Shown: positions 55,306-64,000 of the stretch, in pieces
Layout: each line of letters opens with the position of its first letter
How positions within the stretch are numbered: the stretch's first letter is position 1
NCBI GenBank assembly: GCA_950097015.1
Contig: CATNEN010000038.1
Span: forward strand, 8,680,001-8,744,000
Length of the DNA: 64,000 bases
Reading direction: 5' to 3'
Source of the DNA: Macrostomum hystrix
Lineage: Eukaryota > Animalia > Platyhelminthes
Program-made: the position numbers and the translations under genes
The notes under the pieces: generated by a model
Told to the model about the DNA's origin: nothing
The model's input: the letters and a program-made list of their open reading frames with translations, nothing else
Databases searched by the model: none

Positions 55306-56324
55306 TAAAAATTGTCAGTATAATTGTGTCTATTCTGAAATGTAAAATGCAGGCGATCAGTCACAGATGGCAGCTTTGCTTGTTTTATCGCCCAGGTTTA
55401 GCGAGCTTGTTGCCATAGCAACGGAGATGAGTAGGGCTCAACAGGCTACATTCAGGCCTCCCATTTACTGATTGCTATGAGCCAATGGCGAGCGCCTGTT
55501 GAATGCGAAACACACAGAATCTGTGATGCCTCCCAAATGCATTGGATCGGTTTCGGCAAACAAAAGTTAAAACTATTTCATTGACATTTTTACCCGTGAT
55601 AGAAAGTGAGACTTTCCATCAACCAGAAATACCATTGTTGATGGATATTGCTATCTCAACCTGAAAACTGCATAATTCTCCTGCTAATGGTGAACCTGTC
55701 CAAAAAATCTTTTGACTTGAGTAATTTTTGTCGCACAAAGAAGTCACGGATTGGGGGGCTCTGCACTGAAACCCAGTGAGAGGTTGCAGCATCTCAACAA
55801 TGAGTGCCTGTGCACCCAGAAATGCAACGTTCTTGGGTTGAGCAGTTTTGAATGGGTGATTTTGCAGGTGGATTTTTATCAAATTAGACAATGCATGTTA
55901 AGGATTGCGAAATGTCGCCATCTTGTGCTCAGCTCTCATGAAAATTTGTTAAAACAATTGGCCAGACAAATTCGGAACAATATTGCTAGGATTTTGTCTA
56001 CATTTCTGATAAATCCCTTCCCGATTTCACATTGCTGGCAAACCTGCTGCAAATCTAATATTCCAATGCACTTTCTGGGGCAGTACAAGTAGTCCCTTAT
56101 TTCCTCATCAAACAGCATTTTACCAGCATTGAAATTCCTCTGTCTGGGTTGACAAGCCAGAAACAGACGGACTCAGCACAGGCTGCAAAATTTATGAGTT
56201 CTGAGTTTCTTCTTCTCACCTGCGGGGCAGGGCAAAACTTCTGTCAGACTTACGACTTTTTGTTTATTGTCCAGCAACAATTCAAGCCTTTCATTAGAGC
56301 TTTATGCTTGTGGAAAATCATCAG

Positions 56325-57597
56325 TGTCTCATCTCTCCCGTGTCTCACCTCTCCCGTGTCTCATCTCTCCCGTGTCTCACCTCTCCCGTGTCTCATCTCT
56401 CACGTGTCTCATCTCTCCCGTGTCTCATCTCTCCCGTGTCTCATCTCTCCCGTGTCTCATCTCTCCCGTGTCTCATCTCTCCCGTGTCTCATCTCTCACG
56501 TGTCTCATCTCTCCCGTGTCTCATCTCTCACGTGTCTCATCTCTCCCGTGTCTCATCTCTCCCGTGTCTCATCTCTCCCGTGTCTTATCTCTCCCGTGTC
56601 TCATCTCTCACGTGTCTCATCTCTCCCGTGTCTCATCTCTCCCGTGTCTCATCTCTCCCGTGTCTCATCTCTCCCGTGTCTCATCTCTCCCGTGTCTCAT
56701 CTCTCCCGTGTCTCATCTCTCCCGTGTCTCATCTCTCCCGTGTCTCATCTCTCCCGTGTCTCATCTCTCCCGTGTCTCATCTCTCCCGTGTCTCATCTCT
56801 CCCGTGTCTCATCTCTCCCGTGTCTCATCTCTCCCGTGTCTAATCTCTCCCGTGTCTCATCTCTCCCGTGTCTCATCTCTCACGTGTCTCATCTCTCCCG
56901 TGTCTCATCTCTCCCGTGTCTCATCTCTCCCGTGTCTCATCTCTCCCGTGTCTCATCTCTCCCGTGTCTCATCTCTCCCGTGTCTCATCTCTCCCGTGTC
57001 TCATCTCTCCCGTGTCTCATCTCTCCCGTGTCTCATCTCTCCCGTGTCTCATCTCTCCCGTGTCTCATCTCTCCCGTGTCTCATCTCTCCCGTGTCTCAT
57101 CTCTCCCGTGTCTCATCTCTCCCGTGTCTCATCTCTCCCGTGTCTCATCTCTCCCGTGTCTCATCTCTCCCGTGTCTCATCTCTCCCGTGTCTCATCTCT
57201 CACGTGTCTCATCTCTCCCGTGTCTCATCTCTCCCGTGTCTCATCTCTCCCGTGTCTCATCTCTCCCGTGTCTCATCTCTCCCGTGTCTCATCTCTCCCG
57301 TGTCTCATCTCTCCCGTGTCTAATCTCTCCCGTGTCTCATCTCTCCCGTGTCTCATCTCTCACGTGTCTCATCTCTCCCGTGTCTCATCTCTCCCGTGTC
57401 TCATCTCTCCCGTGTCTCATCTCTCCCGTGTCTCATCTCTCCCGTGTCTCATCTCTCCCGTGTCTCATCTCTCCCGTGTCTCATCTCTCCCGTGTCTCAT
57501 CTCTCCCGTGTCTCATCTCTCCCGTGTCTCATCTCTCCCGTGTCTCATCTCTCCCGTGTCTCATCTCTCCCGTGTCTCATCTCTCCCGTGTCTCATC
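56325..57597. repeat. 16-bp minisatellite (ctctcccgtgtctcat), ~79 copies, intergenic
   Basis: Direct reading. Confidence 0.97.
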
Positions 57598-58356
57598 ATC
57601 TCTGAGCGTTACATTAAGCTGGCCATTGTGCCTTGGACTGTCTCCTTGTCGAGGCGTTTTAGTTTCTGGATTTGTGAGGGCTAAACTGTTGCTATTTTTA
57701 GAAACCCAATCTTTGGGAAACCTCCTTTTAGCTTTCATAAGTCAGTCACATGACTGGCCTCATCCAATCAAAAATGGGCGTTCGATTGCGTCATTCTGTT
57801 AAAGATGTCCTTTATTATGGCAAAAACAACAAGCAGATCTGCCGGGCTGAAACATCAAGCGGCTGTAAACTGTACATACCAATCGTAAGTTAATCTAAGA
57901 AAAACGGAATTTAATGTCGAAAGCCGTATCATATAAAGTTAGCAAATATTAGGCCTCTGTTAGATCAAATATAACAAATTTTCGGAATTCGGTGGGAGAA
58001 ACAGAAGAAGTTAGTATTTTTCATGGCTATAGAACACACATGACTGCTGGTTAAAAAATTATAGCAATTAACAGCACAAAATGAAAAGTCATGTTCTTTG
58101 TTTTGCTTCTTAGATATTACGAGCTACAATTTGAATTAAAATATTTTTGAAGGGTTTATACGAGTACTTCAATCACTAGTTTGAGTGCTTATCTCAGACA
58201 TATACCTAAGAGAAAAAACTTGGCAAAGTCCTAAAATCCTTCGTTATGGTAAAAAATATGTTGAAAATACTTTTGGCATCTACAGAAATATCTTGGCATC
58301 GAATAACAAGTTCCTTGGCAGCATTTCTAAGAAGTCGCAGCTCCGATGCAGACTTC

Positions 58357-61300
58357 TCATGGTCTGTTCGGCCGCATGCCCAATGAAGGGAAACTCAACG
58401 ACCTTCGAATGGACAGCTCACAGGAGGGCACCTGGTTGCCGTCGCTGCTCTGTCTAACCTTGTTAACGAGCTTCGGAATAATGTCCGTGAACGCCTCATT
58501 ATCCTGATGGAAGTCTTCCGCCACGACCTCGCACAGCATGCGCGTGAACAATCCACCCGTGGCCGGGTCTCGGCTGCTCATCCTTCCGCGCGAGGTGCTG
58601 TAAAAGTACATGCAGTCCTCCAGGGGTCCGCTTTCAATCGGCTCTAGCCTACGAACAATCCCTTGTCCATCGCGGCAGGCTTGGACGAAGAAAATCTTCG
58701 GCTTGTCCAGCAGCTGCTCGCAGATGCGGAATCGCGAGTAGATCTGCTCCAGAGACGTCTGGAATCCGTCGTGCGCGTAGATGAAATCCAGGCCTCCGTG
58801 GCTCATGAGGCACACGATTATCGCCTGGGAGTTGTTTAGCTCCTCCTCCGAGCAGATGTTCATCGGCAGCTGCTCGAAAAACTTGCGATTCACATTCTGA
58901 ACAGATCTGCACTCGAAGCCGAGAGTTGTGAAGCAGCGGTACAGGTTGCCTTCGGCCATGTCTACCATTGAGCCCTCCCGGCGCTGCAGGTCCAAACCTA
59001 CGAAGTCGTGGATGTTGATCACCAGGGCGATGCCTCGGTGACTGCCGTGCATCGGATACGACAGGCTCGTGAGTGCGTTCTCGCCGCCATCGCCGCCGCC
59101 GCCTACGGCGCCTTCCTCCCGACTTGCATTATTGGAGCCTCCACTGCCGCCGCCATTGCCGCCAGGTCCGCCAGTTGGCGGCTGGCCTCCCGAGCTGCCG
59201 CCGTGATCGTCCCCGCCAGAGTGCTCCAGGTTGACACCGTGCTCTGACAGATTGGCCAGTTGCCGAATGCTGAAATGCGGGCGGTATTTGAGTTCCAAGT
59301 CAGCTACGATATGGCGAATTGTTATTATTCGAGCTAACGGTTTTGAAACGACTTTCAAATAAGTTACTGATTACTTCAGCATATTAATCAGCCTAATCAA
59401 GAAGAAGTCTAAATGTTGCAGAAATATTCAAGCTACGCTTTCCAGCTTGCCTCTTCTCCACAAAGGCCGCGCACTGGATGTGCTCGCAGTACTTCGCCCA
59501 CTCCTGCGCGTTCATGCTTCGCTCGCCTTTCTTTCTCCAGTGATCCAGGTCCTCCGCACCACCTAGGCGCTCACCCAGGGCCAGAAGAACACCCTCATGG
59601 CCGCATCGGGCAGCCCAGATCAGCGGGCTGTTGCCTGAGAAGTCTGCCAGCTTCAGATTGGCGCCGAGGTCGCACAACTTGCGCACGGTGTCCGAAAATC
59701 CGAGCTTCGCAGCGTAAATGACGGCCGAGAAGTTCATCATGTCCTGCAGGAGTGTGAGTTATACGGCACCATAATAGTACTTGTACATGACAGTTAATGA
59801 GTAACAGAGATTATAACGTGTCTTTAACGCCACTTAGGTCCCAGAGCTCGAATCCGCGGGAGGCCACATTTTTATTTAGGGAGGACTTACACTGCCGGAC
59901 AAACAGAAAGTAGTAAATGTGCGCTTTCGAAAGCTGAAAAGTCTCTTGCTGGCTGCGGGTCGACTGCCACCAAAAGATGCGCCAGGGCCCACATTCCTCC
60001 TGCAAATACTACTGTTATTACGCGTACGAGTGCATCAGTAATACGTCAATGTTGTCTACTTTTCCATACTAATTGGAATTGAAATCCCCATTGGCGTTTC
60101 TGCCACTCCATTGGTGACACCGAATCTCAATAGCTCAGTATATCTATAAGACCGAAATCGCATAAAACCGACAGGTGTTGCAATAGTTTGTGGCATTTCA
60201 GTCTCACTGCGGCAAGAGATTGAGTGTCTAAATAACTCGGAGCCCATACCTGGCAATCTATTTCGGCTCCCATTTTGACCAGTAGTTCAAGAATGCCAGT
60301 CTGATGATTCTTGGCCGCTAGAATGAGCGGCGTCTGTCGCAGGTTGTCGGCCCTGTTTACCTCCACTTCCAGAGCTGTCGGGTCATTTTTGAACGCGTTC
60401 TGAAACTCCTTCAAGACGCTTTCGTGTCCGTTGTGGGCAGCCCAGCAGAGAGCCGTTCTGCCCAGCACGTCCTGCGCGCCAAGAATGGAAGGTTGCAGCT
60501 TCCTCTGCAGCAGCTGGCTGACGAAATCATTCCTGCCTCTGGCAGCGGCGATAATTAGTAGCGTCTGATCCATCGATCCGAACGTCATGGAGATCTTCTC
60601 AGCCGAGGCGCACTGTTTGGAGAGCTGCTGGTCGGACCACTTTTCTGGAGACGACGGACTGAAATGCATTCGATGTTTTAACAGTTTGATGCATGATTCC
60701 GGTTTTGTGCAAACGAAATTGGTAAAAAACTCACAGCACTTCAGACAAAAACAAGAAAAACTTCTTAGTCAGGGTCGAAACGGCGGAAGCGGAACTGCCA
60801 AATCTTTCAGCTCCCTTTTTCAGCTCGGGCAGTCCGAGTCGCTTGTTGACCTCAGAAACAATGCTCTCAATGTGTTCCTGGCGAAACTGCTCATCGTGGA
60901 GAACTTCGCACAGAGCTTGAACTAGAGACTTGCCGCTCATCTCGCCACCACCACTGCAGAGCAAAAAATCATTTTCTCGGATGTAGAACGAGGACTCCTC
61001 GAGCGAGCAGACCTCCAGATACTCATTCTGCTGTTTGCATGCTTGAAAGAAGAATAACTTCGGTTTGTTTTTAAGACCTGGACACTGGTTAGCCCGGAAC
61101 CTGGCCACAACGTCCCTGACTTCAATCTCATCTCCGTCGCTGGCAAAGATACTGCCACTAGATCCGTATCCCAGGATGAAGCACACAAAGCTGCCATGGT
61201 CTGACAGCTCCGGCGATGTCGCGATGCTGTCGATCAGTTGCCAGAACTCGATGCCGTTTGGACTGCTGTTAGTTTCAACAATGAAGCCAAGCTTCTGAAA

Positions 61301-62719
61301 ATTGTCTGCGACTTTTGCAGCCTCCTGCTGCTGATTTGGTCTGGCTGGAAATCTTGAGCTGTCGGTGTACATTTCAATGTTGATTACAATGCAACGGCCA
61401 TTGACTGGGGAGTTAGAGTTGTCGTATGTACCACTCCCAATTGTTCTAAAACAGTTCGGGGAGCAAATATTAATTTTCAGTTGTTTAAATGCTTTCTTAA
61501 CATCGTCTTCAAAATTGATTCAAGCAGTCTTACACTGCATCCTGTGACAACCCGTCTGCACCGGAACATTCCACATTCTCAGCTCGCAGATCAGTACCAG
61601 CTTCTGTCGGACCCATGAGAGCTATAAATTTGGAAGTTTAGCGATTACGTAAGCAAATGACTGTATATACTGCACATTTGGTAACACAGCTGCCTGTAAT
61701 GATTTCAAAGGCAATTAAGCAATTGAGCAGACATAAGCAGTGGGAACAAAAGTTATTAAAGGAAATTTCATTTGACTGTCTGAGTCATTTTGACAAAAAA
61801 TGCAGTATTTTTCGGGTATTTTTCATGCCTGAAAGGTGCCGTAAGGAAATCACTGACCGCAAATTCCGAAGAATCCTGTCAACCTTCCAACTCGGAAATC
61901 ACAAACTCGAAGCGTTCAGAGCTGCAAGACCTAATTAAGTCTCATATAAAAGCTAAGTATGCCTAAAGTGCAGAATAGAAGTAAAAAGCGTAACTCATTT
62001 TCATTTTAAATGCAGTGTAATATGGAAATCCCGTTAAATATTGATTTAATTAATAAATCACAAACATTCTACTTCTTAATTTCATTTCGCCTCTTCAATC
62101 CTCGTTACCTTAAGTTTCTTTTGTAATCACTTTTCCATAAAAGAAAGAAAACTTGGGTCCAGTAAAAAGATCTGCACTCTATTAATAAACAAAATAATAA
62201 TAATATTGAAACCTACCACGAGCATTTAGGAATGGATGCTGCAGAAGCTGCACAGCAGTCTTTCTCTCGCATCTATGCTTAGCTGTGCAACTGGCGTAGA
62301 AATCCTTCAAGACATCGAGACAGTCATCTGGCAGCCTCGGCGCCCCCAGTTTGTTCACCCTCCGAACAATGGCCAGCATGTTCTTGCAGTCTCCGTGAGG
62401 CCGGTTGCCCGTCAGCATCTGGTAGATCACGCAGCCGAAGGCCCAGATGTCGGAGGCGCAGCTGTAGGGAGTGTCCTCTGTCTCTTCCGACAGAAACAGC
62501 TCCGGTGCCATGAACCAAGGGTCACCCTTTGGATTTCCCGTTATGTGGTCAGTAGCCGACTCAACCAGTTGGACGGCCAGTCCGAAGTCAATCAGCTTTA
62601 CCACCCTGTCCTCAGACACCATGATTGTGCGGCAGTTGATGTCCCGATGAACAATGGCCCTTGGCTTCAGAGTGTGCAGGTACTGCATAGCACGGCAGAT
62701 CTGCAATGCATAAGAAGCC
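58357..62719 (-). CDS. Multidomain kinase - pseudocaspase - ankyrin repeats - caspase protein (5' part outside the window)
   Basis: Exons 62719-62217 (kinase C-lobe: HRD, DFG, APE, SDIWAFG), 61621-61534 (linker), 61445-60735 (caspase fold, LGYG/QACKQ), 60658-60250 and 59743-59451 (ankyrin repeats GRTALCWAA, RQTPLILAA, GNSPLIWAA), 59269-58357 (Gly linker and caspase with LMSHG/QACRD). Phases match at all five junctions: 2917 nt = 1 + 972 codons including the stop. Confidence 0.85.
59822..60020 (-). mobile_element. Degenerate SINE family 1 copy in the intron between the ankyrin exons
   Basis: ggtcccagagctcgaatccgcgggaggccacatttttatttagg and gctggctgcgggtc blocks of the family; these read in the same orientation as the + copies, so the strand call is tentative. 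Confidence 0.5.
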
Positions 62720-62756
62720 CTGGTTTGTCTATGATGCCGCATATTTCTACGAGTTA

Positions 62757-64000
62757 GGATTACCGATCCAAGGAATTACCGATCCAATGAATTACCGATC
62801 CAAGGAATTACCGATCCAATGAATTACCGATCTTAGGAATTACCGATCCAATGAATTACCGATTCAATTAATTACCGATCCAAGGAATTACCGATTCAAT
62901 GAATTACCGATCCAAGGAATTACCGATCCAATGAATTACCGATCCAAGGAATTACCGATTCAATGAATTACCGATCCAAGGAATTACCGATCCAATGAAT
63001 TACCGATTCAATTAATTACCGATCCAAGGAATTACCGATTCAATGAATTACCGATCCAAGGAATTACCGATCCAATGAATTACCGATCCAAGGAATTACC
63101 GATTCAATGAATTACCGATCCAAGGAATTACCGATCCAATGAATTACCGATTCAATTAATTACCGATCCAAGGAATTACCGATCCAATGAATTACCGATT
63201 CAATTAATTACCGATCCAAGGAATTACCGATCCAATGAATTACCGATTCAATTAATTACCGATCCAAGGAATTACCGATTCAATGAATTACCGATTCAAT
63301 TAATTACCGATCCAAGGAATTACCGATTCAAGGAATTACCGATCCAAGGAATTACCGATTCAATGAATTACCGATCCAAGGAATTACCGATCCAATGAAT
63401 TACCGATCCAAGGAATTATCGATCCAATGAATTACCGATCTTAGGAATTACCGATCCAATGAATTACCGATTCAATTAATTACCGATCCAAGGAATTACC
63501 GATTCAATGAATTACCGATCCAAGGAATTACCGATCCAATGAATTACCGATCCAAGGAATTACCGATTCAATGAATTACCGATCCAAGGAATTACCGATC
63601 CAATGAATTACCGATTCAATTAATTACCGATCCAAGGAATTACCGATTCAATGAATTACCGATCCAAGGAATTACCGATCCAATGAATTACCGATCCAAG
63701 GAATTACCGATTCAATGAATTACCGATCCAAGGAATTACCGATCCAATGAATTACCGATCCAAGGAATTACCGATCCAAGGAATTACCGATCCAATGAAT
63801 TACCGATTCAATTAATTACCGATCCAAGGAATTACCGATCCAATGAATTACCGATTCAATTAATTACCGATCCAAGGAATTACCGATTCAATGAATTACC
63901 GATTCAATTAATTACCGATCCAAGGAATTACCGATTCAATGAATTACCGATCCAAGGAATTACCGATCCAATGAATTACCGATCCAAGGAATTACCGAGT
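62757..64000. repeat. 16-bp minisatellite (gaattaccgatccaag/t), >75 copies, in the intron splitting the kinase domain
   Basis: Direct reading; runs off the window end. Confidence 0.97.

Follow-up and report, generated by a model that had tools for sequence, protein, structure and literature searches.

The 64,000-nucleotide stretch analysed here (the window; Macrostomum hystrix, contig CATNEN010000038.1, positions 8,680,001 to 8,744,000) carries towards its end a gene on the minus strand whose six in-window exons share one frame with zero stops, as found by a splice-site phase check. To judge from its sequence, this gene encodes a long-pro-domain caspase. Its domain order is a kinase-like domain, a dead caspase fold, five to six ankyrin repeats, a Gly-rich tether and an intact caspase. 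Positions given below are those of the window, except that G000:C38 marks coordinates of the same contig as a whole and L005 the sequence starting just past the window end. Listed from the 5' end of the gene, its features are as follows:

G000:C38:8746056-8746063 (L005 2063-2056), minus strand: putative first coding exon, ATGGATAA, followed by gtaagt; right phase, and fits the leftover 165 nucleotides (nt) of the RNA contig
G000:C38:8744651-8745029 (L005 651-1029), minus strand: kinase N-lobe exon, lying beyond the window; its 3' end is matched by the free end of the RNA contig
62701-64000, minus strand: 3' part of the intron between the kinase exons; satellite at 62759-63998 (Tandem Repeats Finder); RNA contig departs from the genome at 62703
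62217-62700, minus strand: kinase C-lobe exon; Pfam Pkinase, 2e-32; RNA contig spans 62217-62703
61534-61621, minus strand: 88-nt acidic linker exon leading from the kinase to caspase fold 1; supported by phase and, in runs X3 and X4, by the joints 61445/61534 and 61621/62217
60735-61445, minus strand: caspase fold 1 exon (predicted pseudocaspase); Peptidase_C14, 1e-23; caspase-3 alignment and motif table
60250-60658, minus strand: ankyrin exon 1, about three repeats; Ank_2, 5e-21; RNA joints
59451-59743, minus strand: ankyrin exon 2, about two to three repeats including a capping repeat, with a GC donor at its end; Pfam ankyrin, 3e-7; RNA joint
58360-59269, minus strand: last coding exon, a Gly/Ser-rich spacer and then a caspase with intact motifs; Peptidase_C14, 3e-31; caspase-7 alignment
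58357-58359, minus strand: stop codon at the end of the last coding exon
57800-58356, minus strand: 3' untranslated region (UTR), of at least this length; X3 and X4 contigs unbroken over 57800-59269

This order of domains had been put forward in an earlier note made from the letters of the window, and it was recovered on the minus strand by Pfam, which found Pkinase, Peptidase_C14, ankyrins and again Peptidase_C14. On the five open frames concerned, the matches were the Pkinase C-lobe at 62185-62742 (E 2e-32), Peptidase_C14 at 60734-61372 (E 1e-23), ankyrin repeats at 60130-60669 (5e-21) and 59396-59740 (3e-7), and the second Peptidase_C14 at 58360-59358 (E 2.8e-31; 109.5 bits against a gathering cut-off of 21.4).

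Transcript evidence came from four RNA runs belonging to two studies, each of which contained parts of the stretch; X1 and X2 are from a different study than X3 and X4. Runs X3 and X4 yielded one spliced contig each (4,042 nt at depth 38.8 and 4,032 nt at depth 32, respectively) with zero mismatches. Both contigs cover 57800-59269, 59451-59742, 60249-60658, 60735-61445, 61534-61621 and 62217-62703, and the introns 59270-59450 (GC..AG), 59744-60249, 60659-60734, 61446-61533 and 61622-62216 are spliced out in both, RNA depth within introns being 0 to 2.6. Two of the joints were confirmed independently by the second study, namely 61621/62217 in X1 and the GC-AG joint 59269/59451, shared with X3 and X4, in X2. 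Because the genome contains only one full-identity copy of these exons, a retrocopy cannot account for the spliced form. The five in-window introns are spliced within one expressed gene and give one mRNA; the in-phase joining of fragments and the 88-nt exon through five introns, the GC-AG one included, had been anticipated in the earlier note.

The X3 and X4 contigs extend 43 nt past 57800 and 541 nt past 62703, and the first 30 loose letters of the latter extension match, as reverse complement, the end of the N-lobe exon, which lies about 2 kb upstream of the window exons, past the window end. The earlier note had suggested that the N-lobe be sought beyond 64000. The phase-0 donor of this exon, gctagacag/gt, fits the acceptor ttgcag/ATC at 62700 (slashes mark the boundaries) and gives the junction ISHLARQ/ICRAMQYLH. 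The earlier note had let the first exon begin at 62719 and had counted 971 residues; the exon begins 19 nt later, at 62700, and the in-window codons number 965. An acceptor ctcgtag/ at 62748 and an ATG start at 62742 were both rejected, since only ttgcag/ATC at 62700 suits the frame and the contigs cease to match the genome at 62703. Within the N-lobe exon, no in-frame ATG precedes the kinase core. With the putative first coding exon included, exon arithmetic gives eight coding exons summing to 3,282 nt, or about 1,094 codons.

Two minor signals were seen in the RNA data. Run X3 contains a 153-nt contig of depth 2.6 at 59970-60122, inside the 506-nt intron, which may represent unspliced precursor or a small separate transcript. 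Additionally, the 36 nt at 58671-58706, where the KIFFVQAC region is encoded, were matched with 3 mismatches by other contigs of three runs; these probably derive from paralogous caspase messages.

Comparison with solved caspases separated the two caspase folds of the protein. In an alignment with caspase-3 and in the motif table, the first S1 Arg and the Cys (QACK) are still present in caspase fold 1, its catalytic His is replaced by Tyr (GYG versus SHG), and its L3 substrate loop is deleted together with the Arg that it bears. Its last strand is conserved and in fact near-invariant (SAVSTLTKKF versus SAVTSLTKKF). Judged by these residues, fold 1 is a pseudocaspase, that is, a caspase fold predicted to be without a working catalytic site. 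The C-terminal caspase presents RREGS, SHG, QACRD and SSR in alignment with caspase-7 and other caspases, with both S1 arginines, the His and the Cys intact and a short intersubunit linker; by these motifs it is the only one of the two with a complete catalytic apparatus. The spacer and the live caspase come immediately after the ankyrin exons (60658-59451). The spacer measures about 65 residues and is rich in Gly and Ser (23 Gly in the first 70 residues of the last exon), and this presumably flexible Gly-rich tether is conserved.

Homologues were sought with single exons or full-length Macrostomum lignano proteins as queries. An exhaustive HMMER search with caspase fold 1 against 1.84 billion representatives returned only three matches below 1e-30, all from M. 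lignano. Likewise, a search with residues 290-800 of the M. lignano protein P0001, although swamped by ankyrin proteins, returned three family members, again all from M. lignano. P0001 stands for a cluster of A0A1I8GZ94, A0A1I8FVW6 and A0A1I8JG37, and a further member, P0003, is PAA89054.1; both have the Pfam order Pkinase, Peptidase_C14, Ank, Peptidase_C14 and a length of 1,072-1,084 aa. On sequence grounds the P0001 cluster is the orthologue of the M. hystrix gene. Identity to P0001 amounts to 75% for the kinase C-lobe, 58% for caspase fold 1, 55-67% for the ankyrin exons and 58% for the live caspase exon (64% for its core by best alignment), so that conservation is much the same in the pseudocaspase and in the live caspase. 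In these searches the family seems limited to Macrostomum. Proteins with multiple caspase domains also occur in shrimp, amphioxus, Daphnia, mites and insects.

The orthologue resembles the present gene in having a dead first caspase, a live second one and an HRDxNCRT kinase loop. However, its dead fold keeps the His and has lost the Cys and the S1 Arg, whereas that of M. hystrix keeps the Cys and the Arg and has lost the His. All first folds in the motif table share the L3-loop deletion yet lost different residues of the dyad, which suggests that caspase fold 1 was already non-catalytic before the two species split. Other M. lignano models (P0002, P0180 and P0005) end after the ankyrin block, and the same species has Ank-caspase (P0010), Ras/Roc-caspase (P0004) and Ank-kinase-caspase (P0017) proteins.

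The kinase-like domain keeps the beta3 Lys (CVTKTI), the alphaC Glu (FKNEKQL), the HRD Asp, DFG and APE. Its Gly loop is degenerate (ARGSHS), and alignment of its catalytic loop, HRDINCRT, with that of TNIK, HRDIKGQN, shows the Lys replaced by Asn and the metal-binding Asn by Thr. The same odd loop is found in the M. lignano orthologue (HRDVNCRT), and this retention makes it most likely that the domain is a pseudokinase or an atypical kinase serving as a regulatory surface. Having lost the catalytic-loop Asn and Lys, the domain, which the earlier note had counted among the regulators, is probably not an ordinary active kinase. Despite its odd loop, the C-lobe is the best-conserved part of the protein, pointing to a retained binding function or an atypical one. 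As to ancestry, the best solved relatives are the STE20-type kinases TNIK, MST and SLK together with BRAF, and WNK for the orthologue; there was no RIPK among them, and a RIPK likeness was not supported. Pfam found no RHIM, DD, DED or CARD in the exon pieces or in the orthologue. The analogy with RIPK and the ripoptosome that the earlier note had drawn is not supported.

The search for paralogues that the earlier note had proposed was rewarding, as two copies with the same domain order and open frames, B and C, stand head to head 28-40 kb away:

G000:C38:8772294-8777530, minus strand: paralogue B; kinase with HRN and with NFG for DFG; fold 1 with no His and no Cys; fold 2 with Cys replaced by Asp and the L3 Arg lost
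G000:C38:8778594-8783828, plus strand: paralogue C; kinase with HRN; fold 1 with no His and no Cys; fold 2 with Cys replaced by Gly and the L3 Arg lost

By these substitutions, both copies are predicted to be dead in all three enzyme domains. In the tree described below, B-like and C-like lineages were present in M. lignano too. A gene of a different type was met at G000:C24:2967540-2969024 (minus strand), where a caspase with SHG comes after a kinase C-lobe that reads HRN and lacks DFG; it is perhaps of the Ank-kinase-caspase kind represented by P0017 in M. lignano.

The origin of the two caspase folds was addressed with a maximum-likelihood tree of 33 rows, parasitic-flatworm and coral sequences being left out. 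All first folds formed one clade (96/99), nested with the Macrostomum Ank-, kinase- and Ras-caspases (95/91), and all second folds formed a separate, long-stemmed clade (100/99) on the opposite side of the tree. This separation suggests that the two folds did not arise by a recent internal duplication. Tandem duplication of a single caspase domain was accordingly unsupported by the tree, with the long stem leading to caspase 2 as a caveat. Fusion of a kinase-caspase gene with an ANK-caspase gene, the latter supplying the live fold, was likewise unsupported, the fold that groups with the Macrostomum Ank-, kinase- and Ras-caspases being the dead one.

The earlier note had described the architecture as unfamiliar. 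This holds for described proteins, as none was found that combines a kinase fold, an internal ankyrin block and a dead/live caspase pair. It does not hold for databases: the same Pfam order exists in the public M. lignano predictions, entered in UniProt and GenBank only as 'protein kinase domain-containing protein', and no study of these proteins was found by literature search. The full combination is so far known only as unstudied Macrostomum database entries, each part being known elsewhere.

Novelty is tempered further by two published caspases. A 2024 paper reports an M. lignano caspase with a kinase-like pro-domain, sister to flatworm ANK caspases (PMC11463336). Like the present protein, it has a kinase fold ahead of a caspase and belongs to the same genus; however, the portion of text that deals with it carries no accession and mentions neither a second caspase fold nor ankyrins, so that it could equally be of the Ank-kinase-caspase type (P0017). 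According to the same paper, platyhelminths have lost FADD and the DED caspases, ANK caspases are restricted to parasitic platyhelminths, and flatworms have only one unusual pro-domain (PMC11463336). A search of the literature on Macrostomum and caspases gave no further relevant paper. The second precedent is caspase-X of the coral Acropora millepora, a single chain with an inactive N-terminal and an active C-terminal caspase domain, in which the dead domain damps the killing of HeLa cells and its removal increased killing; its authors took cFLIP/procaspase-8 as the template for a model of the pair, with contact via the beta6 strands (PMC4715348). The M. hystrix protein shares the dead N-terminal and live C-terminal caspase in one chain, and its predicted interface uses the same elements, but caspase-X is without a kinase fold and its two caspase domains are not separated by ankyrin repeats. 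The two M. hystrix folds, moreover, fall on opposite sides of the tree. Since the family looks confined to Macrostomum, the resemblance to caspase-X is more likely to be due to convergence.

Other known systems match in part. In cFLIP-L/procaspase-8 (PDB 3H11), a pseudocaspase is paired with a live caspase and tunes it, and caspase-8 chains, including 3H11_B, were among the solved relatives of both M. hystrix folds. However, cFLIP-L and caspase-8 are separate proteins joined by DED domains, whereas here there is a single chain in which Pfam found no DED. The platyhelminth ANK caspases of Schistosoma and others (PMC11463336) have ankyrin repeats directly ahead of the live caspase, as does the present protein, in which, however, the ankyrin block is internal and follows the kinase fold and the dead caspase. 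It is worth noting that free-living M. lignano has an Ank-caspase (P0010), at odds with the restriction of such caspases to parasites given there. In the 33-row tree, which was built without parasitic species, P0010 grouped with caspase fold 1 and not with the live fold (95/91). In RIPK4 and ANKK1, as here, a single chain has both a kinase fold and ankyrin repeats, and the earlier note had invoked their layout. In these proteins, however, the kinase adjoins the ankyrins; in M. hystrix a caspase fold intervenes, the ankyrin block following the dead caspase and not the kinase, which moreover is not RIPK-like and has its loop Asn and Lys replaced.

The cFLIP-like pairing of a dead and a live caspase that the earlier note had evoked gained plausibility from complex prediction. 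Folds 1 and 2 together scored 0.64, the best of three controls scoring 0.00; among 78 solved complexes 51 attained the mark used, as did 2 of 108 mismatched pairs. The runs agreed in at least 60% of contacts, the predicted local distance difference test (pLDDT) of the partners was at least 75 (75-77 for caspase fold 1), and the predicted interface consisted of the last strand and the preceding helix of both folds, which is the canonical caspase dimer interface. We consider it reasonably probable that the gene encodes a long-pro-domain caspase whose dead fold pairs with the live one. The pseudocaspase would then engage its partner by the surface that caspases commonly use to dimerise, in the manner of cFLIP-L with procaspase-8 and of the arrangement proposed for caspase-X of corals. 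The reach needed for pairing inside one chain would come from the ankyrin block and the Gly-rich tether, activity would be set by the pro-domain and not by homodimerisation alone, and recruitment or regulation would fall to the ankyrin and kinase-like modules. Such a fold-back is in keeping with the conserved tether, the conserved interface strand and the caspase-X precedent. What the data show directly is the structure of the gene, its expression, the order of its domains, the state of the key residues and the conservation in the paralogues and in M. lignano; we infer the pairing, be it in cis or in trans, as well as whether the kinase is active and any part played in cell death or immunity.

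Several points weigh against this reading. The predicted pairing may recall the many solved caspase dimers, and the prediction is blind to cis versus trans and to a heterodimer versus a homodimer of caspase 2, the second fold. Most catalytic residues of the kinase are kept, so it could still be active, in the manner of CASK-type kinases. In paralogues B and C, caspase 2 is without its catalytic Cys, so the family, taken together, is not bound to a proteolytic function. Minor isoforms may exist, since the contigs were assembled from short reads. The first coding exon, ATGGATAA, is placed only by its phase, by the length of the contig and by comparison with the N-terminal end of the M. lignano orthologue.

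Other explanations were considered. The protein itself might be an artefact, two or more adjacent genes having been linked through read-through transcription or a chimeric contig, given that the contigs were built from short reads and that a contig running over two genes would show no single transcript. However, the frame is open across every joint, the same contig was obtained at even depth in two runs over nearly silent introns, no stop and no start context lies between the domains, and the order recurs in three paralogues and in the M. lignano gene models; an artefact of this kind is so improbable that it can practically be set aside. Recruitment-driven homodimerisation is the general rule for long-pro-domain caspases, and the M. 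hystrix protein could be a conventional initiator-like caspase of this sort, its live domain homodimerising when the long pro-domain is recruited to a platform, and its dead fold being a spacer or docking surface that pairs with nothing. The complete active site and short intersubunit linker of the live domain would suit such a caspase, and success in complex prediction could be a memory of caspase dimers generally. Against this, the dead fold matches the live one in conservation and has kept its interface strand while losing active-site residues, the tether is conserved, and in caspase-X the dead domain does modulate the live one (PMC4715348). This conventional behaviour is possible but rather unlikely.

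Regulation could also extend beyond one chain. The all-dead paralogues B and C may act as cFLIP-like decoys or activators that pair in trans with the competent member, a role which P0002, P0180 and P0005 may fill in M. lignano. Such a network is compatible with pairing of the dead and live folds, and it is favoured by the open frames and full domain order that B and C retain alongside HRN, a dead fold 1, Cys replaced by Asp or Gly and a lost L3 Arg, as well as by the existence of B-like and C-like lineages in M. lignano. However, B and C could equally be decaying duplicates, and we regard the network as unlikely. The proposal of the earlier note, a ripoptosome in one chain, supposes an active RIPK-type kinase that signals to the fused caspase or is cut by it, with the ankyrin repeats as sensor. 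It accounts for the presence of a kinase fold, a pseudocaspase and a caspase in one chain, and the HRD Asp, DFG and beta3 Lys are indeed there. The STE20-type, BRAF and WNK relationships, the negative Pfam result for RHIM and death-fold domains, the replacement of the loop Asn and Lys shared with the orthologue, and the plainly dead kinases of the paralogues (HRN, NFG) make this proposal very unlikely.

Pairing of the dead fold with the live caspase can be carried further into a more ambitious, and rather doubtful, scheme. Macrostomum, whose phylum is reported to have lost FADD and the DED caspases, may have built a single-chain switch for death or defence as a replacement, where pseudokinase and ankyrin platform would control a built-in pseudocaspase/caspase heterodimer and the all-dead paralogues would serve as cFLIP-like decoys. 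Phosphorylation or a bound ligand would perhaps serve to read out the pseudokinase, as with those of the MLKL type. If true, this would be a self-contained caspase activation module in need of no death-fold adaptor.

Textbook caspases are switched on via death-fold pro-domains such as CARD and DED. The present gene is an RNA-supported caspase whose pro-domain would be made of two pseudo-enzymes and a repeat platform. This design has persisted at least as long as the genus has existed, and the sister copies of the gene appear to have lost all catalysis. It thus offers a compact natural system for asking how a dead caspase fold may tune a live one in one chain, what a kinase-like fold contributes, and how caspase control is rebuilt after loss of the standard adaptors. 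RNA interference works in M. lignano and this species carries the orthologue, so these questions are testable there.

The surroundings of the gene are rich in repeats. According to Tandem Repeats Finder, the intron between the two kinase exons holds about 1.8 kb of a 16/32-bp satellite, lying at 62759-63998 in the window and continuing for 560 bp beyond it (L005 1-560), with the unit ATTACCGATCCAAGGA / ...CCAATGA and 90-92% matches; splicing across this satellite-filled intron still works. A second minisatellite with a 16-bp unit, GTGTCTCATCTCTCCC, occupies 56324-57602 shortly downstream of the 3' UTR in 80 copies with 98% matches, and yields long false open reading frames in three frames together with a strong GC/AT skew. 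Upstream of the gene, an open reading frame of 151 aa (L005 6302-6757, plus strand) may be a transposase remnant, and another of 332 aa (L005 7835-8833, plus strand) has many hydrophobic stretches and possibly encodes a multi-pass membrane receptor.

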